A stretch of DNA of 64,000 nucleotides from Anaeramoeba ignava BMAN (taxonomy: Eukaryota > Protista > Anaeramoebae): the NCBI GenBank assembly GCA_028826165.1, contig JAPDFW010000136.1:372001-436000 (forward strand), written 5' to 3'. The notes under the pieces are model-generated. The model searched no databases. It had not been told where the DNA came from and was given only the letters and a program-made list of their open reading frames with translations. Position numbers and translations under genes: made by a program. Within the stretch, counting starts at the first letter, position 1. Every line of letters begins with the position of its first letter. Positions 55,136 to 57,975 of the stretch are shown here, piece after piece.

Positions 55136-55263
55136 CAAGAATTAAAAATAGAAAAATGAAGAAAGAAAAAAGAAAAATAAAAAAATGAATTTCAAAAAAA
55201 GAAAAAAAAATTTTTATTTTAATTAAAAAAAATAAAAAAAAAACAAAAAAAACAAAAAAAAAA

Positions 55264-55339
55264 CGGATCCTTCAGGAATCGAACCTGAAACCTCCCAAAT
55301 TTTGCTAAATTAGGTGTTGTACCATTCAACTAAAGATCC
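55264..55339 (-). tRNA. tRNA-like gene copy 1, 11-nt anticodon loop (UUUAGCAAAAU), isotype undetermined
   Basis: Reverse complement folds as GGATCTT-TA-GTTG-AATGGTA-CAAC-A-CCTAA-[TTTAGCAAAAT]-TTGGG-AGGTT-TCAGG-TTCGATT-CCTGA-AGGATCC-G. A and B boxes are intact and a poly-T terminator follows. Confidence 0.8.
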
Positions 55340-55419
55340 TTTTTATTTTTGTTCTATTTTTTTTTTTTTAAGAATTAATTATTTTTATATTTAATATTTT
55401 CAAATTTTTATTCTTTTTT

Positions 55420-56830
55420 TTTATTAATAAATTTATTCCATTTTTATTAATAAATTTATTCTATTTTTATTAATAAATTTATTCTATTTTTTATTAATAA
55501 ATTTATTCTATTTTTTATTAATAAATTTATTCCATATTTTATTAATAAATTTATTCCACTTTTAATTAAATAATTTATTCCACTTTTTTATTAATAAATT
55601 TATTCCATTTTTTAATTAATAAATTTATTCTATTTTTATTAATAAATTTATTCTATTTTTATTAATAAATTTATTCCATTTTTATTAATAAATTTATTCC
55701 ATTTTTATTAATAAATTTATTCCATTTTTATTAATAAATTTATTCTGTTTTTATTAATAAATTTATTCTGTTTTTATTAATAAATTTATTCCATTTTTAT
55801 TAATAAATTTATTCCACTTTTTATTTAATAAATTTATTCCATTTTTTATTAATAAATTTATTCCATTTTTATTAATAAATTTATTCCATTTTTATTAATA
55901 AATTTATTCCATTTTTATTAATAAATTTATTCTATTTTTATTAATAAATTTATTCCATTTTTATTAATAAATTAAATTATATTTAATTAATAAATTTATT
56001 CCATTTTTATTAATAAATTTATTCCATATTTTTATTTATTAATTTATTCCATTTTTTATTAATAAATTAAATTATTTTTATATTTTAATAAATAAATTTA
56101 TTCTATTTTTATTAATAAATTTATTCCACTTTTTATTAATAAAAACAAAAAATTATTATATTTTATTAATAAATTTATTCATTCAACTAAAGATTTTTAT
56201 TAATAAATTTATTCCATTTTTATTAATAAATTTATTCCATTTTTATTAATTTAATAAATTTATTCTATTTTTATTAATAAATTTATTCCATTTTTTTAAT
56301 AAATTTAATAAATTTATAAATTATTTTTTATTAATAAATTTATTTCATTTTTATTAATAAATTTATTCCATTTTTATTAATAAATTTATTCCATTTTTAA
56401 TTAATAAATTTATTCTATTTTTATTAATAAATTTAAATATATTTAATTAATAAATTTATTCCATTTTTTTAATTAATAAATTTATTTTATATATTTTATT
56501 AATAAATTTATTCTATTTTTATTTAATAAATTTATTCCATTTTTTATTAATAAATTTATTCTATTTTTTATTAATAAATTTATTCCATTTTTTATTAATA
56601 AATTTATTCCATTTTTAATTAATAAATTTATTTATATATTTTAATTAATAAATTTATTCTATTTTTTATTAATAAATTTATTCTCATTTTTATTAATAAA
56701 TTTATTCCATTTTTTATTTAATAAATTTATTCCATTTTTTATTAATAAATTTATTCTATTTTTTATTAATAAATTTATTCTATTTTTAATTAATAAATTT
56801 ATTCCACTTTTTATTAATAAATTTATTCAA
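55420..56830. repeat. ~22-23-bp satellite (ttattaataaatttattccattt) between the tRNA-like copies
   Basis: About 60 tandem units. Confidence 0.9.
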
Positions 56831-56867
56831 CTTTTAAGAAACAAAAAAAAACAAAAAAAATAAGTAA

Positions 56868-56944
56868 TGGATCCTTCAGGAATCGAACCTGAAACCTCCT
56901 AAGTGACATGTGAATTAGGTGTTGTACCATTCAACTAAAGATCC
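56868..56944 (-). tRNA. tRNA-like gene copy 2, 12-nt anticodon loop (UUCACAUGUCAC); Val(CAC) if a 5-nt intron is removed at 37/38
   Basis: Same body as copy 1, with a perfect CCTAA/TTAGG anticodon stem, discriminator A and poly-T downstream. Confidence 0.8.
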
Positions 56945-57221
56945 TTTTTACTTTTGTTCTATTTTAATTTTTTTTTTTAAAAAATCCTTTTATAAAGATT
57001 ATTTCAAAATTTTATTCCACTTTTTATTTAATTAAAAATTTAAATATTAATAAGAATAAATTTAATTAATAAATCTTATTCCACTTTTTATTTAAATTTA
57101 ATTCAAAAAAAAAAAGAATTTTAGTTAAAAATTAAATTTATTCCACTTTTTGAAATTAACAAAAAAATTTGGAAAAAAAACCAAAATAGAGGAATAAATA
57201 AAAATAAAAATAATAAAAAAA

Positions 57222-57254
57222 TGGATCTTTCAGGAATCGAACCTGAAACCTCCC
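57222..57254 (-). pseudogene. 3' half of the same tRNA-like gene (variable loop, T arm, acceptor 3' strand)
   Basis: Reverse complement is GGGAGGTTTCAGGTTCGATTCCTGAAAGATCCA. No intact 5' half follows. Confidence 0.75.
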
Positions 57255-57289
57255 TTCTTTTGTTTTTTATTTTGTTTCCAAAATTTTTA

Positions 57290-57975
57290 GGTTTTGTTTG
57301 TATTTAATTTTGTTTAAATTTTGTATGTTTTGTTTATATTTTGTTTATATTTTGTTTATTTTCTTTAAAGTTTCTATTTTTTTATTTTTTTATGTTCTAT
57401 TTTTCTTTTTATTTTTGTTTTATATTTTTGTTTAATTTAATTATTTTTATAACCTAATTTTGTTTATATTTTTATTTTGTTTAAATTTTTTTTTTTAAAT
57501 TTTGTTTATTTTTGTTTATAATTTTGTTTATATTTTGTTTATATTTTGTTTATATTTTGTTTCCATTTAGTTTATGTTCTTATTTTGTTTATATTTTGTT
57601 TATATTTAATTTTTTATATTTTGTTTTTATTTAATTTTTTTTTATTTTGTTTTAAATTTTGTTTTATATTTTGTTTATATTTTGTTTTATATTTTGTTTC
57701 TATTTTGTTTCCATTTAGTTTATGTTCTTCTTTTGTTTTATATTTTGTTTACTTAAATTTTGTTTATATTTAGTTTTGTTTATATTTTGTTTATATTTTT
57801 GTTTTATATTTTGTTTTTTCTTTTGTTTATATTTTGTTTATATTTTGTTTCCATTTAGTTCATGTTCTTCTTTTGTTTATATTTAATTTATATTCTTCTT
57901 TTGTTTATATTTTGTTTATATTTAATTTATGTTCTTTTGTTTATATTTTGTTTATATTTTGTTTATATTTTGTTT
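57290..57975. repeat. Low-complexity 12-bp satellite (ttttgtttatat) with a recurring ccatttagtt(t/c)atgttctt unit
   Basis: Tandem units between the tRNA fragment and the stop codon of the second BEACH gene. Confidence 0.8.

Follow-up and report, generated by a model that had tools for sequence, protein, structure and literature searches.

Two tRNA-like genes with one body and unrelated, enlarged anticodon loops in satellite DNA of Anaeramoeba ignava

We analyzed a 64-kb stretch of DNA from Anaeramoeba ignava ("the window"; positions without a contig name count from its first base), and we used the 42.8-Mb, 147-contig assembly for genome-wide searches. The window contains two tRNA-like genes, copy 1 and copy 2, which share one body but have anticodon loops of 11 and 12 nucleotides (nt) that do not resemble each other. 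Our preferred explanation, to which we give roughly even odds (a probability of about 0.5), is that these are young and locally duplicated paralogues of an ordinary tRNA, likely from the tRNA-Ala(AGC) lineage, which were multiplied in satellite DNA. The copies would be redundant and unable to decode, and their loops would be damaged. Spare copies with damaged loops account for the locus better than a new RNA system does.

Both genes are on the reverse strand. Copy 1 (55264..55339) is 76 nt long and has a G as its discriminator base; copy 2 (56868..56944) is 77 nt long and has an A. ARAGORN reports exactly these two genes in the window and types each of them as "tRNA-???". Both also match Rfam's tRNA family (RF00005) from end to end, with 53.4 bits for copy 1 and 59.7 bits for copy 2 (the gathering score is 29). 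They have the shape of a tRNA: all 21 stem pairs of the cloverleaf are standard in both copies, the conserved U8, A14, G18G19 and T-loop GTTCGA are present, and the cloverleaf is at most 0.9 kcal/mol from the minimum free energy. On the gene strand, both copies read GGATCTT in the acceptor stem, GTTG-AATGGTA-CAAC in the D arm, CCTAA in the 5' strand of the anticodon stem, AGGTT in the variable region, TCAGG-TTCGATT-CCTGA in the T arm, and AGGATCC in the 3' strand of the acceptor stem. An A box (TAGTTGAATGG) and a B box (GGTTCGATTCC) are found in both.

The initial annotation of this DNA had described two copies of one body that differ at one base of the anticodon stem, at the discriminator, and across the entire loop. 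The sequence, ARAGORN, and Rfam all agree with this description. The first 30 nt of the two copies are identical, and the last 35 nt have two differences, at the discriminator and at position 41. (Position 41 is in the 3' strand of the anticodon stem, which is TTGGG in copy 1 and TTAGG in copy 2, so that a U·G pair in copy 1 corresponds to a U-A pair in copy 2.) The loops are TTTAGCAAAAT in copy 1 (11 nt, 55299-55309, reverse strand) and TTCACATGTCAC in copy 2 (12 nt, 56903-56914, reverse strand), and at most 4 of 12 positions are alike. Across the loop, the body, and the 24 nt upstream, 8 of 12 loop positions differ, as compared to 5 of 89 positions elsewhere (Fisher p = 2.6e-6; the test treats sites as independent, and would be weaker if each loop arose by one complex mutation).

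We then considered how large the family is. Using BLAST and pattern searches, we found two occurrences of the 5' half in the assembly (with up to 3 mismatches) and three of the 3' half, and no copies from either half beyond the two full copies and one fragment. All members lie in a single 2-kb intergenic stretch (55264-57262). The initial annotation had anticipated that searching the genome with the constant halves would uncover many copies with different loops, and this was not the case. We also rejected a dispersed repeat similar to a short interspersed nuclear element (SINE), or a variable-cassette family, as the assembly has no more than the two full copies and the fragment in that one stretch.

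The fragment (57222..57262, reverse strand) is the 3' part of a third copy. It matches query bases 36-75 by BLAST and the search pattern with one mismatch. It retains the GGG of the anticodon stem, the variable region, the T arm, the 3' strand of the acceptor stem (with A67, not G67), and discriminator A. Its 5' half was replaced by sequence similar to an adjoining satellite (satellite B, see below). Just 5' of the remnant is CAAAAGAA, which resembles the CAAAATTT end of the copy 1 loop. Without its 5' half, the fragment cannot make a tRNA, and we used it as a neutral control within the family. When it is compared with either full copy, 2 of 33 positions differ, and a comparison of copies 1 and 2 over the same stretch also gives 2 of 33. 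In other words, conservation of the fragment equals that of the full copies, and therefore the invariant body does not need selection to explain it. Judging from this alignment, the identity of the bodies is due to the youth of the duplication and not to selection. And if the copies are young, then their loops would not have been altered by slow drift, but rather by one or a few multi-base events each.

To check the loops against sequencing reads, we aligned Logan contigs, and contigs only, to the locus. None of the Logan contigs at the locus has a 7-nt loop. Instead, a 92-nt contig from run X1 (depth 110), which aligns to 56875-56951, combines the D arm and anticodon stem of the copies with a third 12-nt loop that starts with TTTTGGAGTA; its last two loop bases and the 3' stem may hide up to two unlisted differences. 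This contig also has one extra G in the variable region. The upstream flank of copy 2 is matched without any difference by a read contig (depth 53), and the 3' half that the copies share has an extra depth of about 164, or the equivalent of three copies. The contig with the third loop has roughly double the depth of a single copy, so the assembly is probably missing about two gene copies that carry this loop. (Searches of the assembly for the third loop with three patterns gave no match, save one chance-level hit that is not in a tRNA.) Neither of the two loops in the assembly appears in the aligned contigs, plausibly because contig building keeps the most abundant of the alternative paths.

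We also asked whether the copies could be decoding tRNAs. A decoding tRNA has a 7-nt loop with U33 and a purine at position 37, and the loops of copies 1 and 2 have 11 and 12 nt. Furthermore, the copies do not supply an anticodon that the genome needs. If read in the canonical register, the three loops correspond to Val-CAC (copy 2), Leu-UAG (copy 1), and Gln-UUG (the read variant). Each of these, as well as Ala-AGC, already has ordinary genes with 7-nt loops and with bodies that are unrelated to the copies: two for Val-CAC (with the loop TTCACAC), one for Leu-UAG, three for Gln-UUG, and two for Ala-AGC. Our sample of the genome's tRNA genes, which is a subset of them, included all matches to the B-box patterns GGTTCGANYCC and GGGTTCAANYCC, the first 100 matches to GGTTCRANYCC, and the Gln genes; in addition, we ran ARAGORN on 200 kb of tRNA-locus sequence. 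Every ordinary tRNA gene in the sample has a loop of 7 nt. A loop of another size, redundancy, and a truncated relative alongside are all signs of a tRNA pseudogene, and in these respects the pseudogene alternative that the initial annotation mentioned fits the copies.

Odd-sized loops are found elsewhere in our sample, but only in redundant or broken copies. At C104:288264-292571, about ten tRNA-like genes have one acceptor/D/T body and varied anticodon arms (CTG, GTC, CAT, and others). Three identical members of this array have a 9-nt loop and broken stems, another member is an apparent hybrid of two others, and a distant copy (C104:274449-274519) has a 6-nt loop. The remaining case, at C102:51580-51653, derives from tRNA-Lys(TTT) but lacks the 5' strand of the acceptor stem and has a 9-nt loop (CTTTTTGGA) instead of CTTTTAA; this copy is redundant and its main change is in the loop. 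A family with loops of ordinary size is found at C2:756455-758750, where an insert of 61-65 nt interrupts the 5' side of the anticodon stem in each of four tandem tRNA-like genes with a common body. The four have 7-nt loops, namely CTTTGGA, CTCATAA, CTGAAGT, and CTTTTAA (that is, blocks of TTGGA, CATAA, GAAGT, and TTTAA at positions 34-38), and position 37 changes along with the anticodon. The C2 and C104 families are similar to the copies in the window in that they are tandem copies in satellite DNA, with one body, with a differing loop or arm, and redundant with ordinary genes. But most of their members have 7-nt loops with sensible combinations of anticodon and position 37, which none of the copies in the window do, and the bodies are unrelated.

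Several other tRNA-like genes in this genome are unusual. At C73:199236-199371, a long near-palindrome, AT-rich and with arms of about 19 bp, precedes the 3' part of a tRNA-like gene (GGGTTCGAACCC) and takes the place expected for the anticodon arm. At C93:544969-545042, a gene similar to tRNA-Val(TAC) has the loop TCTACAC, with C at position 33 instead of the near-universal U. And at C71:170836-170906 (reverse strand), an intact 71-nt tRNA gene has the anticodon CTA, which reads UAG, along with the usual upstream AAATTAA box. (The window has open reading frames of up to 2138 amino acids under the standard stop codons, which argues that TAG is still a stop codon.)

As to ancestry, the similarities point to alanine tRNAs. 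The D-arm string TAGTTGARTGGYACAAY, with at most one mismatch, has seven matches in the genome, namely five tRNA-Ala genes (one CGC, two TGC, and two AGC) and copies 1 and 2; there were no control hits. The Ala-AGC genes and the copies have in common A26, the CC...GGG of the anticodon stem (the outer CC/GG pairs), the AGG of the variable region, and the T loop, and about 72% of positions are identical (by a hand count). Also, the loop of Ala-AGC (TTAGCAT) can be seen within the copy 1 loop as T+TTAGCA+AAA+T, that is, with lengthened runs of T and A. The identity pair for alanine, G3·U70, is A3-U70 in the copies (the tRNA-Ala genes read GGG.../...ACTATCC), and at many other stem pairs both bases are different from those of Ala-AGC. 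Overall, the sequences make descent from the tRNA-Ala(AGC) lineage most likely. There is also a resemblance to tRNA-Arg(TCG) (C126:891462-891535): acceptor pairs 2-7 of the copies are the same as pairs 1-6 of this gene, including a U·G pair, and both have AGGTT as the variable region. This likeness may be a coincidence or may reflect a mosaic origin. We rejected a chimera of tRNA-Arg and tRNA-Ala because it would require too many exchange points.

The flanks of the copies are similar to each other. Both copies have the elements that the initial annotation listed, namely an A box and a B box, T-run trailers, and an upstream TAGAACA block that they share. The shared upstream block reads AAAATAGAACAAAA[A/G]TAAAAA, and the proximal upstream blocks (AAAAAAATAGAACAAAAATAAAAA at 55340..55363 for copy 1 and ATTAAAATAGAACAAAAGTAAAAA at 56945..56968 for copy 2, both on the reverse strand) align with 21 of 24 positions identical. 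Directly 3' of copy 1 is a trailer (55225..55263, reverse strand) that reads T10 G T8 G T10 on the gene strand and resembles a terminator for RNA polymerase III (Pol III). The trailer of copy 2 (56838..56867, reverse strand) reads TTACTTA T8 G T9 G TTT, which is the same pattern of T runs and Gs but altered beside the gene.

The upstream box that is typical of this genome's tRNA genes is absent from copy 1 and out of place in copy 2. All 19 of the ordinary tRNA genes that we sampled for this have an AAATT(T)AA box within 40 nt upstream. They have one to three such boxes, at about -38 to -7, and several also have ATAAGAAAA further out. This architecture is probably an upstream Pol III promoter element of A. 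ignava. Copy 1 has no AAATTAA-type box in the 40 nt upstream. Copy 2 has a single AAATTAA box at -26, which is more distal than the gene-nearest box in 13 of the 19 ordinary genes. A review describes TATA-like elements upstream of tRNA genes as important for their transcription in certain plants and fungi (PMC3978253); by analogy, the same would hold for the upstream boxes of A. ignava.

The copies are embedded in satellite DNA. Satellite A (55407..56836, strand not assigned; identified with Tandem Repeats Finder) is a 1.4-kb array with about 59 copies of a 23-nt unit, or 30 copies of a 46-nt unit, and it occupies the gap between copies 1 and 2. Related units are found 5' of copy 2 (at about 57010-57150) and 5' of ordinary tRNA-Gln genes elsewhere; the AAAAAGTGGAATA motif of satellite A is also in the repeats upstream of tRNA-Gln on C79 and C117. 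Satellite B (57292..57975, strand not assigned; identified with Tandem Repeats Finder and from the sequence) has 11/22-nt units of the TTTGTTTATAT type, and it adjoins the truncated third copy, in place of its 5' half. At the tRNA-Gln loci, the repeats 5' of the genes have copied roughly the first 13 bases of the gene. Specifically, at C62:381844-383152, C79:61859-62259, and C117:172166-173974, the upstream satellite units each hold the gene start TGGTGTAAGGGTA, which breaks off within the D loop. (On C79 and C117, the gene start is followed by the AAAAAGTGGAATA motif.)

If the copies are damaged spares, then their history might have been as follows. They would have multiplied by unequal exchange within the satellite DNA that borders tRNA genes in A. 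ignava and turns over quickly, and their bodies would be alike owing to recent duplication. Selection for decoding would no longer hold their loops at 7 nt. The copy 1 loop would have been altered by run slippage, in which its T and A runs grew, while copy 2 and the read variant would each have had one multi-base replacement or insertion in the loop. (The difference between those two is the contiguous 34-38 block and one other base.) The third copy would have been truncated within the loop. Transcripts, if they are made, would neither be spliced to 7-nt loops nor decode.

Several observations weigh against this account. First, the loop makes up 12 of the 101 positions compared, yet it has 8 of the 13 differences, and neutral decay alone is insufficient to explain this. 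Within a short time, the loop must have been hit by two or more distinct multi-base events, and the stump was truncated there too, which means that an unexplained bias towards the loop is needed. (The bias may come from selection on the 34-38 block or from fragility of the DNA midway along the gene.) Second, all 21 stem pairs are intact, and in place of the scattered decay and broken stem pairs of a typical pseudogene, the changes are concentrated in the loop. This is where the pseudogene alternative does not fit, although the absence of stem mismatches is compatible with a very young age. Third, excising 5 nt at 37/38 turns the copy 2 loop into TTCACAC, exactly the Val-CAC loop of this genome. 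Fourth, the loop of the read variant starts with TTTTGGA, and its 34-38 block, TTGGA, is that of one member of the C2 family. Fifth, the stem pairs that differ on both sides from Ala-AGC suggest that, once separate from the alanine family, the ancestor was long maintained as a structured RNA.

Among the alternatives, the one that survives best, although we consider it unlikely, is that the copies encode a functional but non-decoding tRNA-shaped RNA. The body would be kept for transcription by Pol III, for processing, and for binding proteins, and the loop would be free to vary or would act as a decoy, guide, or docking site. This would fit with the intact cloverleaf and its conserved tertiary bases, with the intact terminators, with at least three different loops on one body, and with the other tRNA-shaped genes in this genome that have non-standard anticodon arms. 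The two-sided changes in the stems, relative to Ala-AGC, also imply long maintenance of the structure. But the assembly has only two copies, with about two more implied by the reads, and the dead fragment is equally conserved, so selection on the body is not detectable. Nor did we find sequences that match the loops and could be their targets or donors: there were none for either loop in the window, and for the copy 2 loop, there were none genome-wide beyond chance. The usual upstream box is missing (copy 1) or displaced (copy 2), and exact-pattern scans of metagenome, viral, and prokaryote collections found no relatives of the family. The non-translational scaffold RNA that the initial annotation proposed has, in short, gained no positive support.

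Somewhat more doubtful is the idea that turnover of the loop is directed, either because the DNA of the loop tends to break repeatedly and to be repaired with errors or because there is selection for new 34-38 blocks, as in the genome's other one-body families. Every rearrangement that we could reconstruct in this family, namely two or three replacements of the loop and the break that truncated the fragment, has hit the loop. Copy 2 is distinguished from the read variant by a contiguous block at 34-38 plus a single base. Similarly, the four C2 genes vary in this block while their acceptor, D, and T arms are nearly constant, and the Lys-derived stump on C102 also has an altered loop of 9 nt. 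On the other hand, satellites elsewhere cut tRNA genes at other sites, such as the D loop of tRNA-Gln. There is no nuclease or mobile element among the neighbouring genes, and no donor for the loops in the searches described above. Also, there are very few events, and we noticed the pattern post hoc. The initial annotation had suggested a young, mobile, tRNA-derived repeat whose loop is diversified by cleavage and repair. Of the three alternatives in that annotation, this one comes nearest to the evidence, in that the family is young and local and its loops were altered by mutational events, but we see no support for mobility, and cleavage and repair of the loop are conjecture. A broader proposal, which seems to us less probable still, is that A. 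ignava keeps several small families of tRNA-shaped genes, each with one body and with interchangeable 34-38 blocks or enlarged loops. The copies in the window would then be expressed scaffold RNAs with non-decoding loops, or would be products of directed loop turnover.

It is improbable that the copies are decoding tRNAs with micro-introns of 4-5 nt at 37/38, as the initial annotation had proposed for its first alternative; the anticodons would be Val-CAC for copy 2, UAG for copy 1, and UUG for the read variant. In favor of this, removing TGTCA from copy 2 leaves the ordinary Val-CAC loop TTCACAC, and copy 2 has A73, as valine tRNAs do. Also, all three loops begin with TT, so U33 is retained. 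However, the same cut leaves TTTAGCT in copy 1, with C37, and TTTTGGC in the read variant. (As the initial annotation had noted, the cut gives a clean valine loop from copy 2 and no clean loop from copy 1.) Copy 1 would combine C37 and a leucine anticodon with G73 and a body that has a short variable arm. The anticodon-intron pair, between position 32 and the intron base that is 3 nt before the 3' splice site, could form only in copy 1 (U32-A). In copy 2 and in the read variant, U32 faces another U, so this pair is impossible. When folded alone, the anticodon arm has no structure. ARAGORN's intron option gave arbitrary anticodons for both copies, and these were themselves split by the intron. 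We also considered an intron at 33/34, which would yield Phe-AAA, Asp-GUC, or Tyr-GUA; these registers, including the Asp-GUC that was suggested for copy 2, fail on the discriminator or on U33.

The length of the putative introns is another problem. Intron-containing precursor tRNAs, with introns at 37/38, are similar to the copies in that the extra bases are 3' of the anticodon and that excision from copy 2 would restore a canonical loop. But their introns are much longer, with at least 11 nt in published surveys, and two of the three loops here lack the bulge-helix-bulge or anticodon-intron pairing. The shortest nuclear tRNA intron in Cyanidioschyzon merolae is 11 bp (PMC3728597), and the shortest in Mesodinium rubrum is 13 nt (bioRxiv 10.64898/2026.07.09.736142). 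The only very short or ectopic introns cited in these sources are from nucleomorphs, such as that of Guillardia theta (PMC3728597, PMC3978253). In our sample of A. ignava tRNA genes, there are two introns, both at 37/38, of about 38 nt in Tyr-GTA (on C82) and about 30 nt in Ser-TGA (on C67), and none of the other genes has an insert of 4-5 nt. And as discussed above, ordinary genes with unrelated bodies serve all three anticodons. Finally, it is very improbable that the true loops have 7 nt and that the longer ones are artefacts of assembly or polishing: the assembly's two loops are not directly represented in the Logan contigs aligned on copy 2, but the read contig that spans the loop has 12 nt as well, two unrelated strings of 11-12 nt are unlike the indel errors of long reads, and the flanks of copy 2 were confirmed without a single difference.

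Returning to our preferred explanation, that the copies are damaged spares, there are partial precedents in other organisms. In tRNA remolding or anticodon shifts, which have been described in Drosophila (PMC2997554) and in mitochondria (PMC4783518), a duplicated gene similarly keeps its body while its loop changes, and the copy is redundant with a conventional gene. For instance, the mitochondrial tRNA-X and tRNA-Leu2 of Vischeria derive from trnK, and one of them has an 8-nt loop (PMC4824035). In contrast to those cases, the copies in A. ignava are nuclear and in satellite DNA, their loops have 11-12 nt instead of 7-8, the changes involve multiple bases, and there is no clean new identity. 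The tRNA arrays of Entamoeba are also similar, as their genes are flanked by fast-evolving, AT-rich short tandem repeats and were multiplied locally (PMC2652664). But those arrays have many identical and apparently functional genes, with no clear pseudogenes, while the family described here has 2-5 copies, abnormal loops, and a truncated member.

The surroundings of the locus are unremarkable. G+C content is about 20% across the window, and the best protein matches for the window are proteins from Anaeramoeba ignava. The tRNA-like locus is flanked by genes for an RRM protein and for a BEACH-domain protein. Because these neighbours are ordinary eukaryotic genes, we rejected a foreign origin for the locus. 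We did not find a clear orthologue of the BEACH gene with which to compare synteny to another Anaeramoeba (the matches are only paralogues, with at most 51% identity).

If the copies are only young and damaged spares, then the locus is a snapshot of the birth and death of tRNA genes within the satellite DNA of a little-studied anaerobic protist. It is also a caution for annotators, as both Rfam and ARAGORN call such genes tRNAs. If instead the copies are expressed and their loops are trimmed, they would have the shortest nuclear tRNA introns relative to the surveys cited above, and if they are expressed and their loops are kept, they would be a new kind of tRNA-scaffold RNA.

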